This document shows positions 9,201 through 21,200 of a DNA stretch of 64,000 bases, piece after piece. The position numbers and the translations under genes were made by a program. The notes under the pieces were generated by a model, which saw only the letters and a program-made list of their open reading frames with translations, had not been told where the DNA came from and ran no database searches. Numbering within the stretch: position 1 is the first letter of the stretch; each line of letters starts with the position of its first letter. Source of the DNA: Hydrolagus colliei (Eukaryota); assembly GCA_035084275.1 (NCBI GenBank), contig CM068744.1:53568001-53632000 (forward strand), written 5' to 3'.

Positions 9201-12200
9201 CCCACCATCAGGAACACTTGCACCTGTAAAAGACATTTAAATAGTATGACATAGTCTTGTAAGTGAAATAGACTTTGAAGAGAAGTAAATAAACACCCTA
9301 TTGTCACTTTCTCAAATAATAGTCCTCCAGAATTCAACTTGATTCTTAACCATGCGTTAAACCAATACCTTTTAAATGTAATATTTTATTGGCTTTTCAC
9401 GATGTCATAGCATGACATTATACCAATTCATAGCATAGTACCAATTCTAGAACTAGTCAGCAGCCACAGATAGCGGCATTCATAGGGCTGCGGCACTCAA
9501 AAGGATTAAGGCTGATAATAAAATATGTAGTGACAGCTGGGTTAGCTTCTTGAAGTTAATTTAGGGTTAAATCACATCCACTTTAAAAGAGTTTATTTTA
9601 TTATGACATACCGTTTAGTAATGTCCTCTTTGACATTTTGACACAAGACCGATCAGAAACTGGAAAGGACAAAAATAAAAGACCTAATTAACACAGCGAG
9701 ACAACAACAACAAAGTAACATTTATAGAGTGTTTTTCACATCGGGAGGCCATCCCAAGGTGCTGAACAGTTAGGTCGAGACCATGTGGATCAACAAATAG
9801 AAAAATGGAGCAGTTTCCTCTGTAAAATGACATCATGTATAGGTTCCAGGATCCTATTTCTGGCTTCTACAAAAGTACACATATACAACAATCCTTACAA
9901 TCCTTGCATTTGATATAGCGCCTTGTCGTGTCTTCGAGGCGTTTCAAAGTGCTTCACAGAATACACTGTGAAGTGAAACAGAAACAGAAGTTGCGGGGAA
10001 CATTCAGCAGGTCAGGCAGCATCTGGTGAAGGGTCATGGACCCGAAACGTTGACTCACTGTCCTTTCTTCGTAGATGCTGCCTGACCTGCTGAATGTTCC
10101 CAGCGACTGTTGTTTCTGTTTCAAATTTCCAGCAACTGCAGTATTTTGCGTTTTGACACTGTAAAGTGAATTGACTGTTTTGTGGATGAAACATGGCAGC
10201 CAATGGTGCACATCAATTGTCACAATGTCAAAATAATTGTCAATACAATAGCAATCTGGTTTCATTGTGCAAACAATGATTAATACAGTATCAGTAAATT
10301 TAAAGATAATATAAATGCAGATTAAGTAAAGGTACTGCTTGCAACCAAAATTAGAGTCACAACAGGCACCAAGAATTCCATAATGGAACAGAGACTGCAT
10401 CATAGCCAGCAATGCTAAACACTACCTCAATAAATTAATAAATTAAATTAAGCAAGAACAAGCGGATTACAATGTCATAACTGTGTACGGATCACCACCT
10501 CGTGAACAGAAAGATGATCATCAAATCATCAAAAGGACCAAGACATGGATAGCACACAAAATCCTGTAGTTCTCCAATGGGAAGAAAAGTAAACAAATTG
10601 TTGATAGCCTGAGAAAATCAACTAGTATCTACATAAGCATACAGGAAAGGAAACAAGACTGATTTACAGTTATTTCTCCAGGCATGCGTTATGCAAAAAT
10701 GGATTGCACACTGCCAGTATTGCTAGGTTGGTTCCTGGGATGAAGGGATCTGACCAATGAGAAGGCCTATATTCTCTAGAATATCGAAGAATTAGAGGTG
10801 ATTTTATAGAAATCTATAAGATTCTTAAGGGGCTTGACAGAGTAGACAGTGGAGACTGTTTCCCTCGGTAGGAGAATCTATAACAATGGGTCAGTGTTAA
10901 GATTAAGGGTCAGCCTTTTCGAACAAAGTTGAAGAAACTCTTCTTCGCTCAGAGGGTAGTGAATTTATGGAACTCTCTACCCCAAAAGGCCGTAGATGCT
11001 CAGTCTTTGAACATATTCAAGACTGAGATTGATAGATTTCTAATGGATAGAGGGATTAAGGGATATGGTGATAAAGCGAGCAGATGGAGTTAGATTAGAA
11101 GATTAGCCATGATTTTATCGAATGGCGGGGCCGGCTCGAGGGGTCAAATGGCCTACTCCTGCTCCTAATTCCTAAATTCCTATGTATTCAAATTAAATGG
11201 TAAATAAACATTTAAAATTATTCTTTGTGTAAACCGTCTCAAAACAGACGTTTGATGAAAATGTTTTCCAAATCTTCACGGAAAGGCAAAACACAAGAGT
11301 ATAATTATGGAATGTATCATGCTATATAGCCACATCTACCCACCCACCCAACCACCTTCACATCGAGAGGACGTCCCAAGGCACTATACAGTCAGGGAGG
11401 GACAAGGGCAGAAGGGGAGGGGTTCGGGCAGGGGGAAGGAGAACAGGAAAATTGACTGTATATTTGTGGGTGAAATGCAGCAGCCAAATTGCGCGCAGCA
11501 GTGTCCCACAAACAGCCATGGAAATGGGGCCGGGGAGAAAGGGGGAAAAGAGGGTAAGGGAGGAGAGGGAGTGAAAAATGATGTGGGGTAAAGTCAGGGA
11601 GGAAGAGGGGGGAGAAAAGGGGGTAAGGGAGAGAAAGGTGGGTCGGGGGCAAGTTCAGGGAGAAAGGGGGGTAAGGGGGAAGAGGGGGGGAAGGGGGAAA
11701 GGGGGGAGAGAAAGGGGGGAAAGGGAGTGAGGAAAGAAGAAGGGAGGAGGCCAGGAGGGGGGGGGGGGGGGGGAATCAAACAACAACAATCAACAAACAA
11801 AAAAAAAACAATAGTTCAGTAACCGCTCCTTGTCCTCGCCGCCCGCCTGGACCATCTTTAAAATGGCGGGAAACACCACACCAGGGCCCAATGTGGTGAC
11901 AGGCTCCAAAACAGACCGGCTCCTCAGGTGACGACTTGGTGACGGCCCTGGTACCTCGGACACGGCGTGTCTGGCCAGCTCGCCCGGCAGCAGCAGCCTC
12001 ACCGCCGTCTGGATCTCCTGCGACGAGATGATGGGAAAAGGCCTCGCCGGGGAACCACTTGAAGATGTCGTTGTCGAGCGAGTTCACGACGACGAAATGC
12101 CCATGTTTGGACTGTAACACTGTCTTTCCTTATGTCCAATTCACTTTGACGTGAGGTAGTACATTAGCCACAATGCAGAGGATGCGTCACAGATTCCAGC

Positions 12201-15200
12201 AGAACCTGTTTCTGTGAAGGCAGCAGTCCTTGATATCTCCACAGGGATCCTCAGATTCTGAGGACTTGGTGATGTTCTTGACAATGATGGTCTGGGTAGG
12301 GACATGGGTCACCTGGCAGGTGTAAAGCGCATCCCTCCTCCAATCTCTGACTGGGACAGTCAGCTGGCTGCTGGTGCTAAATTGTCTTCTCTAGCTGAGG
12401 GAGAGGTCACAACACCTGAGGCTACGATCTGGGAGCCCTTCAGCCAGTCAACCCTGAGTTTGCCTGGACGGAAAGCAGATATTAAGCAGACAGCAGTGGC
12501 CTGTTTGTTCAGGGTGATGTGTTCAGGGGACGTCTGTGTGAGGATCACAACTGGGGGCATTGGGGTCTGCAAAACATGATCTGAGACAGGAGCCGACGTC
12601 ACCGCGTCTGCCGCCCCCAGCGACTGGGGAAAGATGAAAACACACAAATGGGGCAACCTATATAACACAGTCACCTGGCTAGGAATATCTCTGACCCCAA
12701 CTAAGACATAAACATGAAAAATGGCTGACTTTCAGGTCTTCAGATTGCTGCTGACATTTCTTGTGTGTTTCAAGCATGTACAGCGTACAAGCGACATCTA
12801 AACAAAGCCTTGCTCATCCAGCTAGGCAGACAGGCAGGCATCATCACAGTTCTGTCCTGTTTATGAATAAAACAGATATTATCTATCTTACTCTGCCATG
12901 ACTAAGTGGCAGAATAATAAAATGACAATCAAACCAAATGTAAACCCTCCCCAATGGCCCAATACTTACCAAAAGGTCATTGCTTTGATTTTTGACTCTG
13001 CTGAGATGCTTTACGTCAGCTAAGGCTGCAATTTGTCTCAACAACTCTGGTTTTGGGGGGGAGGGGGAAAAAAAGGAGGTTGGAGCATTCACCCTCCTGG
13101 TCACCACCTACAGATGCTGACTTGAAATTGTATGCATGCACTTGGAACAAAGTCAATATTAGGATCGGTTGTAAGGCAGCACTAAGCTATAGTGTAAAGG
13201 TCTGATCTAGCATTCACACAATGGTGATCTTGGAACTGACATAGCCCAAAGGGAAAATATTTTGGTATGTGGAATAAATTCTTTAATTTATATCAGATCA
13301 TAACTTTCTATTTTGAGTGTATATTTTGGAAAAACTGAACTTGACAAATCAGTTGATAACAGTGATAGTAAAGTATTTGGCAAATATACATCACAAGATG
13401 GTTACAGACAAAGACGATTCTTGGGTCATATTACCACAATACCCAACAGTTTTAGGGTATTTGTTAAATGACTAGTATTTTAGCTTCCACCATCCTTTTC
13501 TGTGATTTACCTTTTTTCCTGAAAACTATCCTTCACTGATGTAGAATTGCCTACTGTGCATATTAGAAGCATTTGAAAAAAATGAAAAACATTACTGCTA
13601 CTATTCCATTATTCTGAAGATCAAATGGATATACGGATATACATACAGTATATGGATGTACATTTGTTCAAGATAAATTCAAACATTTTCATTCTTATTT
13701 TTAAAAGAGAAAAGGAATTGAACAGTTATATAACAATAAATAGCTATTAATTCCTCTACTGCATTCATTCTCCACACTCCCTCCAGCAACTCATTTTCCA
13801 CAGTTCTGCTGGAAGGATGTTTCCATTTCTTAAGCAAACATCTAATATGGATTTACCTTTCATAGAGGCAAGCTTCAAGACCATCCGTCCTATTAGGCAC
13901 TCCTTTAACATGGAATCATAGTTGACCCAACGATGAATCTGAAATGTGAGGGCAATGAATGTCAAATCAACTGGTCCATTCAGATTGATAGATATTTGTA
14001 CCCATGATTTTTTTAAGTATCTTCGCTGGATACATTTTACAATATCAATCAGTTTATTTACAATGCAATTTTCCATTAAACATCAGGAAACTACTTCATC
14101 CTAGAGTAGTCCATATAGCACATTTCACAAGATTTGGCCAGCCTCTTACCCAAGTTCTTGACATAGTTAATGTAATTAACTTTGAAACCCACTTTATTTT
14201 GTTCGGATTCAAATTGAAAATTCAGAAGCATCGTTATTCATATACAGGTATCCCCCAAATTACAACACTTCTATTTACATTGTTTCGATTCAACGGACAT
14301 AATTTTTTAACACCTTTTTAATCGATATACGACATTTGGTTTTGTTTTAACAACCCAAAAATTTGGCGCATCTTTTTTGCGCATGCACAGTACATAGTGT
14401 ATTTTGCGGTAAAATTGCAGTCGTATACTGTATCCAAGCGTTTGAACTGGCCAATAGCATGTCGCTACGTCAGTGGTTCTCAACTTTTTTTGCTGCGACC
14501 CTAATTTGCCTCGCATCATTAGAGGGCGTTATCGCGATTGACGTTCAGATTGTGGACTCAGCTATAAAAAAGTACGCTCTTTATACAAATTGGTCGGCAG
14601 TGTCGCTTTTTTTTTAGTGGTAAAACCTTTTTTTTTAGCGGCTAAAGCTTTTTTCTAGCGTTTTAAAAGTGAGCTTCTTTTGAAGTGATACCACGCAATT
14701 TCAAGTGATTTGCAGCCTCCACTGCATTTCTACAATGTCAGAAAAGAGACCGGTAAATGAAATGGGCAGCAGTAATACCGCTAGCAGTAAAAAAAACGCA
14801 AAGTCATTACTTTAGATACTAAATCTTGCCTATTTGTGTTATTTTGTGTGTTTTTTTTTAGTGTTTTTTAAGGTCCGAAAATTGTGAAAAGAACGCATCT
14901 TGGGTTATATAATGGGACCGCATGGGAAACCGCGTTTCGATTTACGACGTTTCTATTTGAGTACCATTTTTTAGGAACGCAGCCCTGTCGTAAATCGGGG
15001 TATCCCTGTACAGTACTTTTTTTCTTAAAGGTAAAAGTAAATACTTCAATAAAGAATAAGGGTATTTTAGATAACAAAAACAATCAGAAATAATTTATTT
15101 AAACTCCACAACCATTTTCTGACTTCTTAATAATCCAATGTGATAAATCTTGCTCAAGATAAATCATTTTTAGGAATGCAATATAAGATGAGAAGCAACT

Positions 15201-18200
15201 AATTGCTCCATTTGTCTTCATCCAAAGTTTTCTGTCAGGCCAGGTCTTCACAAAAAAAATCTAGCTGCAATCTTGCTCCATCATCAAACTGTCATCTCAT
15301 TCACTGATTATTCAGGAAGTTGGTTAATTCCTTTTGAAATGCAAGGCAGAGGATTTTGCAATCTTTGTACATGGTGGACTGTAATTTCAGTTACCATTTT
15401 CAAAAATATCTTTTTATCAGTACATCCAATTTGCACCAACCTACTAGCACGCCTTATTTAATCTGTCTACTCATTACTGTTATATACACTTTAGGACATG
15501 TATCAAAGATGGATAGATGAAAAAAGTTTAGCTAATCAAAACTTTTGTAAATTCACTTCTTTAGTTCTAACTAAATCTCATAACAGAGATGTGAAAACCT
15601 ATTTATGACTGAACTGAATCATTGTAGTTCAGTGGCTCCCTCCTGTGCCAGTCGCATTTCACGACAAGGTTATGCTGTGGATGTAATTATATGCAGACAA
15701 GAACCTTGGAGAAGGAGAAGCTAGCATCGTCAGAACCATTCAGTTAATGGAGACATTTCGCACTCACCTCCAAAAGAATTCCATTTTTGTATGGCATTTA
15801 CTTCAACCATGAAATAAAAACGTTCAGGGGGATTCAAAGCAAAAATCTCTGATTTCAAGTCCTGTGCTCAACCAATTCGGCTACTGTTCAGTCAAATTCA
15901 GAGAGAGAGAAAAAAAGTTTATTCAAATTATGTGCCACTTAAGTTTACCTGATCAAACAACTCTGTTCCATCAATTCCAGCTCCTTTCATGAGTTCTTCC
16001 TCTCCTCCAGGGTGATATTCCAAATAAGGAGTCAGATTGTAAACCATACCTTAAAAGACAAACAGCGCAAACCATTAGGAAGATTACATAAAATGGAGAG
16101 CTTCATCAGGACATCCAACACTAGGACAGTTTCTAATGCAACAATTGAAAGATACAGTAAAAGCCCGTTTATCCGGCACACTCGGGGGGGGGGGGGGGGG
16201 GGGGTCAACTAATTGACTGTGCCAGATAATCGAGCGGCAAGTTGCTGAAAACCCAACACAAAAAAATTATTTATTTTAAAACATACTATATTAATAATAT
16301 ACTAAATAGTAACAGAATATTGTATAGCTACTTACCAATAAAAATGTCAGCACACTCGGTAAAAAAGCATTTTTTACCGATCAATAAAAACCTCCAAGTT
16401 CGTAAGTTTAATAAGTGCGCATGCGCGCATTGAGTATACTCGGGATTGCTGGAATGGGGAATTGCCCCAGGAGGGGTTCGAGAAATCCGGTTAATTGGGT
16501 CACGGATAAACAGGCTTTTACTGTAGTTTGATATTGTGTTCTGGTCAATCCCAATGTAACTTTATAAAATTCAGTTTTTAGGAGACACAAGGGAATAAAA
16601 TTCAGATAGTAATTACTCTCTCAATATTACCTGTTAAGCAATTCTTTAGAATCAACTATAATTCACATTTATAACATATTACATTTCAGAACATCACACA
16701 TGCCCCCTTGTGTCCACAACAGAGAGTGCAGATACAGATTAGCAAATCATGCATAATTAGAGCACTCAATTTAAATTTCTGGTTAATTTCTCAAGGTACC
16801 TGTAAAAGCGTTGACTCAATCCCAAAAAAAACTTAATATAAGGATTTGTGAAGAGCAACTGGAAAGTACAGCTGATCTGAAGGGATCTTTTTCGTTAAAT
16901 GAACACCTGAAGTCAGTGTAATAATAATATAATAACCTGCAGATAATCCAAAACTCTGAGGTCCATGTCCTGTATCGCACCAAGCTTCGCGACCACCATC
17001 TCCCCCATTCTCGCCTGACTCAATTGGCTCCCCATCACCCAGAGGATCCAATTCAAGATCCTGGTCCTCACAATCAAAGCCCTGCATGGCCTTGGTCCAC
17101 CCCACCTCTGCGATCTCCTAATCCCCTACCAACCTGCCTGCCGGCCATTTGCTCAGCAGGCTCCAGCCAGCTCCATGTCCCCCGACCCACCCGTCCCACT
17201 ATTGGCAGATGAGCCGTCAGCAACTCTGCTCCTAACCTCTGGAACTCCATCCCGCACTTTCTCCACCGCGCCCCTTCCCTGGCCCCCCTTCAAGTCCTGC
17301 CTCAATGTCCTCCTCTTCAACAGTCCCATTGGTCACCCCAAATCCCCCCTTTCCCTCCACCCTCCCCATACCAAACTCCAGCTCGGTTCTGAAACAGCGC
17401 CTTGGGATGTCCTTCTGACGTGAATGGCGCTATACAAGTGTAATTTTGTTGTTATATAATAATCTTTTCATCTGATAAAGCACTTTTCACATCTTATCGA
17501 CGTCTCAAAGCACTTCACAGAATATACTGTAAAGTGAATTGACTGTATATTTGTAGGCAAAACTCGGCAGCCAATTGTGCACAGCAATGTCCCACAAACA
17601 GTCCTGGATTGAAAATGACCAATTTTTATTATTGTGTTTTTTTGGGGACGGATTATTATTAAGCGTATGGCATAAGGAAACTTGCCCAATGTTTCACCCT
17701 GATCTGCCTGGATTCGAACACAGGTGAGTGCTCTCATCACTGAGCTCCAGGAACTCCACAAACCAAAACATCCAAACCAACACATCCAGACAAAGCAATA
17801 AGTCAGGAAACTTAACCCACGATACTCAAGGAATCAAAAAAAACTATCTCACCTCGGATACATATCCAGCAGTCATCTTTCTTATTGTGTTTAGCAAGTT
17901 CTTCCTCTGAAACCTCAATAAGTCTTCCCTTAAGCCCAGTCAGGTCCTTGCCGCTCTTTGTCAGCCGGATCCAGTCCATTAAACTTCTGCCAGGTTTCAA
18001 TCGCACCTTTACGTAGTGAAAAGAAATACTGATGAAGCAATCTTGAAACAGTGATTTCACATAAAAACTTGATAGGTATTTATCAGATTCAACGGAATAG
18101 GTCAAATGTTTGCGCACACAATTAGTTTCAGTAACGTATCCTGGGTTAAAATTGCTTGTAATGAGCCTCAGTTTCCAAAGAAAATTGCTGAAATGATGTT

Positions 18201-21200
18201 CCAAGCAAGTTTAAGATCACTCACTCTGCATCATATATACAAACATTGGCTGAGATGCTTTTACTCATTTCATTTTTTCTTTTACCAGCCAAGTCAGCAT
18301 TGATCCAACTCGGATAGAAAATACCTGTGTAGATGTCAGGTGATCATTAAGTATGCAGATATCATTCCACATATCACTCAGGAAGTTTCAGGTAAATAGT
18401 ACAACACATATTCGCTTTAAGACAGTAAACACAGAATGCTATTTGTTAATACAGTAAAAGCCTGTTTATCTGGCACCCAATCAACCGTAAGTTCTGTATA
18501 ACCAGCATTGCAAAATTAACAGTCTGCATTCGATTAACCGGAATTTTGAAATTTTTTGGGGGGGCCGTTTTCGGCCAAATATGCGGCACGCGCTTTAACT
18601 GGCATTGGCCAGATCCCGATGGTGATGGATAAGGATAAACAGGCTTTTACTGTACCTGTATATTTTTTAAAAGAATATGTATATTTGTATATTTAAAAGA
18701 AAAAAACATGTGTTGTTTTGTGGGGCAATGGCAACAATGATTAATGCCTTTATATAATAATAATAATCCTTGGATTTGATATAGCGCTTTTTCACATCTT
18801 ATCGACGTCTCAAAGAGCTTCACAGAATATACTGTAAAGGAAATTGACTGTATATTTGTGGGTGAAACACAGTAGCCAATTGTGCACAGCAGTGTCCCAC
18901 AAACAGTCGTGAATTTTATTATTATTGTGGTTTATTATTTGGCATGTGGAGTATGGAAATTTGCCCAAGGTTTCGCCCTGATCTGCCTGGATTCAAACAC
19001 AGGTCTCACACTTGTAAGGCGAGTGCTCTAACCACTGAGCTACAGGAGCTCCACAATATGATCACATTAGGCATTGTATTGCACCAAGAAAGTTTTCAGC
19101 CTCGGGAGTACGTTCTAAAGTGCTTCACAGAATTTACTACGATAGCGTAGTGACTATATTTTGTAGTTAATAGTAAATACAAATGTGAAAATAAAAAGAA
19201 AATAATCTGCTTTTCCCTTTCCTCCTCCCCCCACACACAGATAACAGAAATTACCTTACACCTTCATCTTAATGACACAAACAGGGGTGGACTGGCTTGT
19301 TCTGTTTATGAATAAAGCTTTATTTTACTTTAATTTCTCTAATGCTAACAACACTGTAGTAAGTGACTGAGCTCAGTCTAGAGACAGAGCACCAGTGAGA
19401 AGTAGATTCTCAATGTCATGCCTGCAGGTTAAACACACCTTAGTCCACTTTACAATATTTACTGGAGAAAGAGAGCGTCTCTTTATCATTCATGAGGATT
19501 TATCATCATAAATACTTAATCAAATAATCGCAAGTATTTACTATTGGCACATGCCATATCAGACTAACGCATATATCTGGAGATACTATTTAAGCCTCAA
19601 GTTTTTTTAATATCTAGTATTAATTCTAATTCCTCCTACCAAGTCAATGAGATTAGGTATCATGAGTTGTATTTTGCAAGTACAGTACATATTTTGAATC
19701 AAAGAGCCTCTAAACCAAATTATGAGTTAAAAGTTGCTTCTTCGTGCACTCCTGTATGTGATGCCAGCCCAAAGTTTGAGCCTCTGCCATCTGCACTCAG
19801 CAATTTTTAAACAGGATAGGTTACCCCTTTTCTACAATGTATAGTGGCACACACAATAACTATTTATAATTTATGCCTCAATCAACATTTAAAGGTGAAT
19901 TCAACAAATATTACGATCATTTAATTTTACAACGCCGACACATGACATCTGGCCACCAAATATGCGCCAAGGCGTTTTTATAACATGAATCACCTAATCC
20001 ATTTTTTCTCCAACCCACTTCACAGGATCATTTAATATTCCTCCTTTACAAACAACAATCTTGTTCCATTTAAAGAATTTTAAACCACAACAAAATTACA
20101 TTTATAGCGTGCCTTTCATGTCGGGAGGACGTCTCAAGGCATTGAACTTGGGACGTCCTCCCGACGTGAAAGGCGCTCTATAAATGTAATTTGTTGTTGT
20201 TGTTGTTGAACAGTTAGGTCGGGATCCGAGTAAGGGAGAGGGGCAAGGCAGGGGCGGGAGAGTTAGGAGAGTAGGGAGAGAGTTGGGAGGGCAGCAGAAG
20301 GCATAGTTGAAGAGGAGGGTCTTAAGACCAGCTGAAAGCCTGTCTGCCGATGGTAGGGCAGGGGACATGGAACAGGCTGAACGGAGTGTGCGGGAGGGTT
20401 CATAGGGGGACAGTGAGTTGGAGGTGGGGTGAGGGGTCAAGGCCGTGAATGGCCCTGAAGGTGAGGATGAGGATCCGAACACTGTATTAACAGGAGAATT
20501 TCTACCTAATAATTCTGTGTTACACTTAACTAGAATGATTGGACCTCTAACTTCTGCATCGTAAAATAGCACACAGTCATGGATTAATTGACCAAATTGA
20601 CAAATAAGCTATTGCACTATAACACAATTGTTACAAATAAATCAAAAAATATTTTAATCAGGATGACAAATCCACCCCAACAAAAATAAACTGTGCCCAG
20701 AATCATATGGCGTTCTGATTATTTTCTAAATGAGTAAATACAAATAGCTAAAGGTGCAATATTTAATTTTTATATACAGGTAAATATTCTGTTTTTTGAA
20801 TAGAATTATTGTATTTCATATGAAGATGTTTACTGTTCAGGTTTTATTTGAAATGTTTCCAGGCAACCCAATCACAACACAAGCTGCACATTACTGAACT
20901 AGAGATGGTGGCAACCGAAATACAGTAATAATAATAATATCAAAATACCAGTAAATACTAAAATACAAATTTTTATTTAAAAATAAATAAAAATGAACCG
21001 GATGGTTGCTTAACCAGTGTTTTCACACTTGACCATGCCACACCCAGGCACATCAAGTCTTAAGTCATATGGAGTGATACCGTCAGGTTACCCTTTTCAG
21101 CTCAGCGTCAAGTCATACCTAACACTAGTTATGTGAAGGGTGCTACCATAAATTCAAGTTATTATTGCTGTTGCATTCTTCTCATTCTTAAAAACAAGCA

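Follow-up and report, generated by a model that had tools for sequence, protein, structure and literature searches.

The window analysed here is a 64-kb stretch of the genome of Hydrolagus colliei, and its minus strand carries an intron-free, broken piece of an IgM heavy chain that is fused to a piece of histone H2B. This chimera has three to four parts, namely a possible J, a C-mu2, half of a C-mu3 and two thirds of H2B, and lies between two exons of a CYB5R4-like gene. Its features are as follows, with positions counted within the window and the source of each assignment in brackets.

11340 to 11812, minus strand: flank, probably outside the chimera (Tandem Repeats Finder, window self-comparison)
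11774 to 11812: T/G-rich microsatellite (Tandem Repeats Finder)
11815 to 11923, minus strand: GC-rich 109-nt tail, 3′ of the H2B stop codon (Rfam, Pfam, Atlas, window self-comparison)
11924 to 12105, minus strand: histone H2B, coding part that begins near codon 55 ('AMGI') and runs to the TGA stop at about 11926-11924 (z-scored alignments)
12106 to 12257, lower end approximate, minus strand: first half of C-mu3 (tblastn, frameshift-aware alignment)
12257 to 12258, minus strand: intronless C-mu2/C-mu3 exon-exon junction (alignment with genomic contigs and gene models)
12258 to 12580, minus strand: equivalent of a complete IgM C-mu2 exon, holocephalan type (Pfam, PDB matches, identity matrix)
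12581 to 12633, minus strand: GC-rich (70%), CpG-rich 53-nt stretch abutting the C-mu2 exon, a possible JH remnant (match to J peptides)
13880 to 13945, minus strand: CYB5R4-like host exon; the chimera is about 1.2 kb downstream, in the same orientation (ORF list)
About 17.83-17.9 kb: second host exon, start of the cytochrome b5 domain (Pfam, ORF list)

Ordinary intron sequence surrounds the chimera, and SINEs are found to either side of it. The host is a cytochrome-b5-reductase-4-like gene, probably CYB5R4; the Pfam Cyt-b5 match at 17815-18204 (E 6.9e-05, 23.2 bits) is slightly below the 23.7-bit gathering cut-off. A tblastn search with Ig proteins found no other Ig domain within the 64-kb window. 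Thus, as expected of a retrocopy, the Ig piece lies away from any parent locus. The chimera as a whole is interrupted by a stop codon and by no fewer than six or seven breaks of the frame, and no identical or orthologous copy was found in the public protein collections.

The C-mu2 part (12580-12258, minus strand) is a C1-set domain (Pfam PF07654), with E values of 2.7e-07 and 7e-04 for its two frame pieces. In the identity matrix, it is 63-68% identical to the IgM C-mu2 of Callorhinchus and Hydrolagus, the top matches of a library search are Ig models of Callorhinchus milii at 60-65% identity, and its PDB matches are IgM, lambda and UrIg C domains. The exon opens on a split codon, G|AT (Asp), and its last letters are ..TCC TCA G; its start agrees with '..TPS|DKVLHKP' in P0227 and with 'cag|AT CGC GTG' in L002. 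A single frameshifting deletion is found in this part, at about 12381-12379. The C-mu3 part has a Cys-containing, hinge-like start followed by strands A to about C, and ends in the middle of the domain at 'LQSKHG'. It is matched by the tblastn queries P0180, P0196, P0198 and P0200, and scores z = 19-21 against shuffled queries in the frameshift-aware alignment. An extension of the H2B homology upstream over 12112-12257 had also been considered and was dropped, as these two results show C-mu3. This part is disrupted by two frameshifts, located near 12228 and near 12185, and by a TAA stop codon (12132-12130), so that the Ig lesions amount to three frameshifts and one stop codon in addition to the truncation of C-mu3.

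Both parts thus belong to an IgM constant region: they are C1-set domains, their nearest relatives are IgM C-mu2 and C-mu3, and they are arranged in the order of a cDNA. They do not form a functional IgM gene, as the frame is broken and C-mu1, C-mu4, the secretory tail and the V domain are all absent. The initial annotation had described two Ig constant domains in this region, and both are real, but C-mu3 extends over just about half of its length, and the proposed end at 12112 falls right before the fusion to H2B. That same-sense fusion had been overlooked, as had the dead frame and the break within C-mu3.

The C-mu2/C-mu3 intron is missing in this copy and present in its relatives. The junction reads TCA G|AA at 12258/12257, while the homologous base in the shark genomic contigs L001 and L002 runs on as G|GTAAGA (TCAG|AATCTGAGGATCCC in the window versus CAGG|GTAAGAGA in L001 and CCAG|GTAAGAAA in L002). 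Four read-through models from Callorhinchus, the elephant shark (P0104, P0044, P0141 and P0209), likewise have a GT donor there, with a G followed by GT(A/G)GAAG-type codons. The codon split by the junction is kept, G|AA encoding Glu (compare 'ECDDPSGGVK' in Callorhinchus P0196). An intronless join of two constant domains had been proposed for exactly this position, and an alignment to the genomic contigs and models of relatives places the true C-mu2/C-mu3 boundary there to the base. The intron is therefore absent precisely at an exon-exon junction, as in a retrocopy. Because the junction is base-exact, with its split codon, and the site is within an unrelated CYB5R4 intron, the copying of a spliced IgM RNA into germ-line DNA is the simplest origin of the Ig part.

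At the other side of C-mu2, 12581/12580 is the exact start of the exon. A second TCA G|AT junction had been reported near 12590; a similar site does exist, but it is located at 12581/12580 and is no more than a possible exon-exon junction. The preceding 'ctcag' would suit a retained intron acceptor equally well as a splice (compare 'ctttcag|AT' in L002). The adjoining 53-nt stretch reads 'PSRWGRQTR' and then ..GTGACGTC..GTCTCAG, with a CpG observed/expected ratio of 0.93. In frameshift-aware comparisons with three chimaera J peptides, in which random 65-mers of the window served as the null, p was 0.015-0.04; for the J of P0223, it was 0.001-0.006, with 0.006 obtained under a GC-matched null. 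J-to-C-mu2 joins are present in the chimaera sequences P0204 and P0223. Besides a JH remnant, this stretch could represent the 3′ end of the intron upstream of C-mu2 or an unrelated fragment that was captured. A reading of the sequence upstream of it gave no convincing J-type recombination signal (heptamer/nonamer), and searches upstream of 12581 for C-mu1, for a V domain and, by protein and by DNA self-comparison, for a second C-mu2 all remained within shuffled controls.

The H2B part has the same orientation as the Ig part and comprises the last two thirds of the coding sequence. Its histone fold is recognisable in the conserved C-terminal helix region, where 24 of 25 residues are identical; a 31-residue stretch aligns with z = 29, and a 17-residue stretch aligns to IMNSFVNDIFKRIAGEA with z = 8.5. 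Nevertheless, this is not an intact H2B gene, since the first 55 codons or so are missing, the frame breaks at least three times, about eight codons have been deleted and a TCGTCGTCG-type insertion is present. The CpG observed/expected ratio is 1.07 (0.39 for the window), and this full CpG content, found together with so many indels, fits poorly with simple slow decay.

The joint between C-mu3 and H2B lies within 'CAG TCC AAA CAT GGG' (about 12113-12099), where about 12 nt can be read as either parent. Microhomology is thus possible, although both it and the breakpoints are read from the chimera itself and not from the parent genes. Since the joint is head to tail and same-sense, with breakpoints within exons of both partners, splicing or exon shuffling can be excluded as the cause of the fusion. 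Two unrelated sequences, C-mu3 in mid-domain and H2B at about codon 55, are joined internally on the minus strand, which is the arrangement expected of a template switch. Downstream of the H2B stop, the 109-nt tail holds a poor look-alike of the histone stem-loop (GGTCTGTTTTGGAGCC ... ACCACA). Rfam recognised no histone 3′ stem-loop in the tail at E values up to 10, only sub-threshold snoRNA-like noise; neither Pfam nor Atlas recognised anything at 11793-11927, and the tail has no second copy within the window. Because of this GC-rich tail, in which no stem-loop is detectable, the H2B piece could also derive from genomic DNA.

Beyond the tail, the flank at 11340-11812 also contains a C run of 17 nt, CT-rich low-complexity sequence over about 250 nt and a 5′-truncated SINE (about 11340-11530), the core of which (11449-11522) has at least 15 further copies in the window. 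No A-rich tract that could represent a poly(A) tail follows the H2B stop on the sense (minus) strand, where the T/G-rich microsatellite and the C run are found instead. When 12590-13250 and 11250-11960 were compared in search of a target-site duplication around the provisional ends of the insertion, the words they share were low-complexity 9-10-mers, and none reached 11 nt. Similarly, no LINE 3′ tail is recognisable, and no direct repeats flanking the chimera were found.

Taken as a whole, the feature is probably a dead chimeric Ig-H2B retrocopy that arose when a reverse transcriptase switched templates from an H2B RNA to a spliced IgM RNA, a reading to which we assign a probability of roughly 0.6. 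The enzyme was most likely that of an L2/CR1-type LINE, a kind abundant in this genome; it would have started at the 3′ end of the H2B RNA and jumped in mid-message, at a short stretch of likeness, to the spliced IgM heavy-chain RNA. Copying would then have continued back through C-mu3 and C-mu2, and possibly into a J spliced directly to C-mu2, a splice also made by the CH1-less IgM genes of chimaeras. Insertion of the product into the CYB5R4 intron would have come last, in a germ-line or early embryonic cell. The J-like stretch favours this retrocopy reading, as its position is precisely the one that a J spliced to C-mu2 would occupy. By contrast, it counts against the same reading that replication-dependent H2B mRNAs have no poly(A) tail, and that the Ig homology begins exactly at an exon boundary, which a retained acceptor would explain as well. 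The processed IgH transcript of the initial annotation therefore survives in part: a spliced IgM RNA is still the simplest origin, but the copy is a chimera with H2B, and neither poly(A) nor a target-site duplication was found.

The lack of these insertion hallmarks, including a LINE tail, would suit a double-strand-break repair patchwork, in which short cDNA- or RNA-templated fragments from abundant transcripts (IgM, H2B and perhaps others) were end-joined into the CYB5R4 intron without LINE target-primed insertion. The chimera is indeed a row of short unrelated pieces (the 53-nt CpG-rich stretch, Ig, H2B and the 109-nt tail), its indels are bunched near the joints, and the possible microhomology at the Ig/H2B joint would be in keeping with such repair. 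However, all recognisable pieces have the same sense, as template switching predicts and random ligation does not. We regard this origin as unlikely, though worth keeping in mind; it differs in the insertion step alone, and a spliced IgM RNA or its cDNA would still be required in a germ-line cell.

Another origin, which we hold to be improbable, is at the level of DNA, with a fragment of an Ig cluster, or an already intronless Ig pseudogene, standing beside an H2B relic and moved here by segmental duplication or transposon capture. The 'ctcag|AT' before C-mu2, which resembles a retained intron acceptor, and the extension of GC-rich sequence beyond the H2B stop codon both lend themselves to this explanation. 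Nevertheless, the breaks in C-mu3 and H2B both fall within exons and the two are joined in a frame-like register, the window contains no transposon ends, inverted repeats or second copy of the chimera, and the exact loss of the intron would need an earlier RNA step anyway. It is still far less probable that the chimera is an artefact (an assembly chimera or one from cDNA contamination) or, conversely, a working exon or gene. Its odd anatomy, the orientation shared with the host gene and the acceptor-like site in front could be read in these ways, but the accumulated frame breaks and the stop argue against fresh cDNA contamination and a coding role alike, and the surroundings are those of an ordinary intron with SINEs.

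The arrival of Ig RNA in the germ line is not new, as examples of this kind have been known in human DNA since 1982. Two processed immunoglobulin genes, and no more, are given for human DNA in the IMGT account: IGHEP2 (C-epsilon, chromosome 9) and IGLJ-C/OR18 (lambda J-C, chromosome 18; Hollis et al. 1982) (PMC7555362). The present chimera resembles both in that germ-line Ig constant sequence lies outside the Ig locus with the introns between its exons gone. IGLJ-C/OR18, moreover, shows J and C connected in the manner of a splice, and the J-like stretch would imply the same for the present copy. However, the human copies are plain retrocopies of a single transcript, whereas this one stops in the middle of C-mu3, is fused to H2B and has no poly(A) tail; IGLJ-C/OR18 carries a poly(A) tract. 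The source also differs, as the present copy belongs to a cartilaginous fish, whose Ig loci are of the cluster type, and our literature search found no processed Ig gene described for this group. Chimeric retrogenes formed by LINE template switching, of the type described by Buzdin and Gogvadze and including three-part ones, are documented (PMC2104539). As here, copies of different transcripts are fused directly, in one orientation and at internal positions. In the described cases, the 3′ part bears a LINE, a SINE or poly(A), and target-site duplications are usually present, whereas the 3′ recognisable part here is a histone message, with no such tail or duplication found.

Within chimaeras themselves, CH1-less IgM clusters, including J-to-C-mu2 joins, are described for Hydrolagus (Rast et al. 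1998) (PMC3149040). They share with the present copy a chimaera-type C-mu2 and, if the 53-nt stretch is a J, a J-to-C-mu2 splice like those of P0204 and P0223. In contrast, the CH1-less genes as described are intact, with multiple exons, introns and two C-mu2-type exons, while the copy is an intronless broken fragment with one C-mu2, outside the clusters. In the germline-joined Ig genes of cartilaginous fish, V(D)J was fused by RAG in germ cells, and the introns of the leader and constant region are kept (PMC2193156). The chimera resembles these genes as an unusual germ-line state of Ig sequences in a cartilaginous fish, and both imply that Ig genes are acted on in germ cells. However, no V homology above shuffled controls was found upstream, and what distinguishes the chimera is a missing intron, a signature of RNA processing and not of recombination. 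The proposed bearing of this locus on how germline-joined clusters arise does not follow, since introns are retained in those clusters, for which RAG recombination is the explanation (PMC2193156).

The chimera is one defunct relic, of kinds already known, and shows no sign of function; its value is that of a marker that could be dated by comparison with the parent genes and with the empty site in related species. In a genome where L2/CR1-type elements, which lack a poly(A) tail, dominate, the fusion to H2B is a natural example of template switching or of a cDNA patchwork. Processed Ig genes are rare, and each marks a past transcript of B-cell type in a cell that contributed to the germ line. 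The chimera thereby touches on the standing question of why the Ig clusters of chimaeras and sharks are so often rearranged in the germ line. RAG-mediated germline joining is peculiar to cartilaginous fish, and its usually assumed precondition is that the Ig clusters are open in the germ line. It is doubtful, but conceivable, that the 53-nt stretch is a genuine JH spliced to C-mu2 with no V, and hence the relict of a J-C-mu transcript that was sterile, whether unrearranged or partly rearranged, and was made in a germ-line cell. If so, it would provide independent sequence evidence for transcriptionally open heavy-chain clusters in the germ line of cartilaginous fish.

Both of the Ig constant domains proposed by the initial annotation are real, and they belong to a longer composite element, the features of which are all on the minus strand of the window:

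12633-12581, minus strand: J-like stretch of 53 nt directly before C-mu2
12580-12258, minus strand: C-mu2 domain of IgM
12257 to about 12106, minus strand: partial C-mu3 domain
about 12105 to 11924, minus strand: partial histone H2B
11923-11815, minus strand: tail of 109 nt
3′ of the tail, in order, probably as flank outside the chimera: T/G-rich microsatellite, C run, CT-rich low complexity, truncated SINE

In three-frame translation, an Ig C1-set domain is split across two frames, and both pieces match PF07654 in Pfam (E = 2.7e-07 and 7e-04); matches in the PDB are to IgM, lambda and UrIg constant domains. A profile-free search, run exhaustively against 1.8 billion representative proteins, recovered many vertebrate Ig constant domains, with only short Ig models of Callorhinchus milii, the elephant shark and a chimaera relative, reaching about 60% identity. 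A second-round search with one of these models led to cDNA-derived IgM heavy chains of Callorhinchus, Hydrolagus and Heterodontus. The domain is 63-68% identical to C-mu2 of Callorhinchus and Hydrolagus and 52% identical to that of the horn shark; by comparison with these cDNA-derived chains, it can be assigned unambiguously to C-mu2. The proteins ranked first by summed score in the C1-set search of the same 1.8 billion sequences (P0030-P0036) come from rays, are very long and carry 8-36 C1-set repeats; they are labelled "uncharacterized" or "titin-like" and include XP_072126131 of Mobula birostris (1428 aa) and one of 4676 aa.

From C-mu2, the match runs on directly into C-mu3, both in tblastn with full heavy chains and in alignment with a custom-written, frameshift-aware protein-to-DNA aligner. 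The C-mu3 part starts with a 10-residue, Cys-containing hinge-like piece, the counterpart of "ECDDPSGGVK" in the Callorhinchus sequence P0196, followed by a 14-residue segment and a 27-residue segment matching "LTCVV.NAPLHVNVTWTQG.THLQSGYG", and then breaks off mid-domain. On its own, it scores 19-21 standard deviations above shuffled queries. Reading 12112-12257 as an extension of the H2B homology was rejected, as both methods place this interval in C-mu3. The Ig copy is dead: C-mu2 carries a frameshifting deletion at about 12381-12379, and C-mu3 has frameshifts at about 12228 and 12185 and a TAA stop at 12132-12130. No further Ig domains were found in the 64-kb window by tblastn with full heavy chains.

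The absence of an intron between the two domains is borne out to the exact base. C-mu2 ends with AAG TCC TCA G at 12258, and the next base begins AA TCT GAG GAT CCC TGT, so that the split Glu codon (G|AA) is the same as in spliced Callorhinchus sequence. Two genomic shark contigs that hold a C-mu2 exon and its flanks (L001 and L002) align to exactly 12258 and then read GTAAGA, and four gene models of Callorhinchus whose reading runs on beyond the exon (P0104, P0044, P0141 and P0209) continue with Gly and codons spelling GT(A/G)GAAG. Since all of these continue with GT past the junction base, the intron is present in the relatives examined, and the parent type there is not naturally intronless.

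A similar junction had been placed near 12590. It does exist, at 12581/12580, precisely where the C-mu2 exon opens with its first codon: the Asp codon is split G|AT, as in P0227 ("..TPS|DKVLHKP") and L002 ("ctttcag|AT CGC GTG"). The "ctcag" before it suits an intron acceptor just as well as the last bases of a preceding exon. Upstream of 12581, no C-mu1, V domain or second C-mu2 stood above shuffled controls. The 53-nt stretch that adjoins C-mu2 has a GC content of 70%, is CpG-rich and, with one frameshift allowed, reads as a 16-residue peptide. Four J peptides were tried: scored against three chimaera J peptides, this stretch ranks among the best 1.5-4% of random 65-mers, and against the J of P0223 ("WGRGTKVTVTE") among the best 0.1-0.6%, a GC-matched null included. 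Direct J-to-C-mu2-type joins occur in the chimaera sequences P0204 and P0223, in agreement with the CH1-less IgM clusters described for ratfish (PMC3149040). There is roughly an even chance that the stretch is a J remnant; the sequence preceding it shows no evident recombination signal. Callorhinchus models and a metaclust fragment (P0204, P0207 and P0223) run germline-type V-D-J into a C-mu2-type domain without C-mu1 ("..WGQGTKVTVTD|DNMPPVPSPP.."); they are chimaera CH1-less heavy chains filed in databases under generic names. On the plus strand, antisense to the host gene, 12624-12707 forms a hairpin weakly resembling a C/D-box snoRNA (terminal stem GGGG...CCCC, AGATGA C-like box, CTGA D box), which is probably due to chance, with an Rfam score of 19 bits (E = 2-3) far under the gathering score.

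The fusion to H2B and the lesions were absent from the initial annotation. From about 12105, the sequence follows H2B from around codon 55 to its stop codon at about 11926-11924. One segment holds "MGI" and a 17-residue piece (z = 8.5); a second agrees with H2B at 24 of 25 residues and continues into "GTRAVTK" (z = 29). The frame of this part is broken in several places, and it has also lost about eight codons and gained a small insertion. In both partners the break falls inside an exon, and the two run in the same sense across the joint. This lies inside "CAG TCC AAA CAT GGG", which is readable as "LQSGYG" of C-mu3 or "SSKAMG" of H2B, making microhomology possible at the joint. The observed/expected CpG ratio is 1.07 in the H2B part (11926-12105) and 0.93 in the J-like part (12581-12633), compared with 0.18-0.26 for the Ig part and 0.39 across the window. 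Such a high value in H2B is unusual for a relic with so much damage; it may point to a rather recent event that caused the damage as the copy formed, to parents that were already damaged, or to local protection from methylation. The 109-nt tail is GC-rich, with no family assigned and no recognition by Pfam or Atlas, and Rfam found no histone stem-loop.

The chimera lies in an intron of a gene in the same orientation. Two exons on that strand encode the start (about 17.85 kb) and the end (about 13.9 kb) of a cytochrome-b5 domain; the former is a marginal Pfam Cyt-b5 match (23.2 bits against a cut-off of 23.7), the latter has no Pfam match, and the chimera follows it. Going by the human protein, we read these exons as part of a CYB5R4-like gene.

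Because the intron is removed exactly, two unrelated messages are fused internally in the same sense and the site is away from Ig clusters, the sequence fits a chimeric retrocopy, in which reverse transcriptase would have switched between the IgM and H2B messages at internal points. Chimeric retrocopies produced by such template switching have been described in fungi and mammals (PMC2104539). No poly(A) tail was found 3′ of the chimera, and neither a LINE tail nor a target-site duplication was found around it. With these marks missing, two less probable rivals stay alive beside the template-switch retrocopy: a patchwork of cDNA fragments assembled during break repair, and relocation, at the level of DNA, of a piece that had been rearranged beforehand. 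The window holds no second copy of the chimera.

Several repeats lie nearby. One SINE family, abundant and conserved in its core, occurs at 11449-11522 and in no fewer than 15 further places (e.g., 18841, 33319, 50823 and 63665). In sense, it translates as "..IHDC.WDTAVRNWLL.FTHKY", and this repeat also contributes N-terminal sequence to the Callorhinchus Ig models P0044 and P0180. A plus-strand ORF at 10929-11093 has no Pfam match, and its 30-residue ending reads as the C-terminal motif of CR1/L2-type LINE ORF2, showing that LINE debris of this type lies less than 1 kb from the chimera. An inverted repeat of 51 nt at 9974-10024 and 10073-10123, with 92% complementarity and a 48-nt loop, has a hairpin-forming or MITE-like structure.

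The chimera is non-functional and well documented, and belongs to kinds that are already known. Human DNA holds processed immunoglobulin genes, IGHEP2 and IGLJ-C/OR18 (PMC7555362), so the passage of Ig RNA into germ-line DNA is not new and has been on record since 1982. The copy had also been thought to bear on how germline-joined clusters arise. This does not follow directly, because the shark clusters are ascribed to the recombinase RAG acting in germ cells, and they keep their introns (PMC2193156), whereas the copy described here lacks the one between C-mu2 and C-mu3. It is unlikely that the Ig part derives from a sterile transcript; if it did, this would be the sole link between the copy and the germline-joined clusters.
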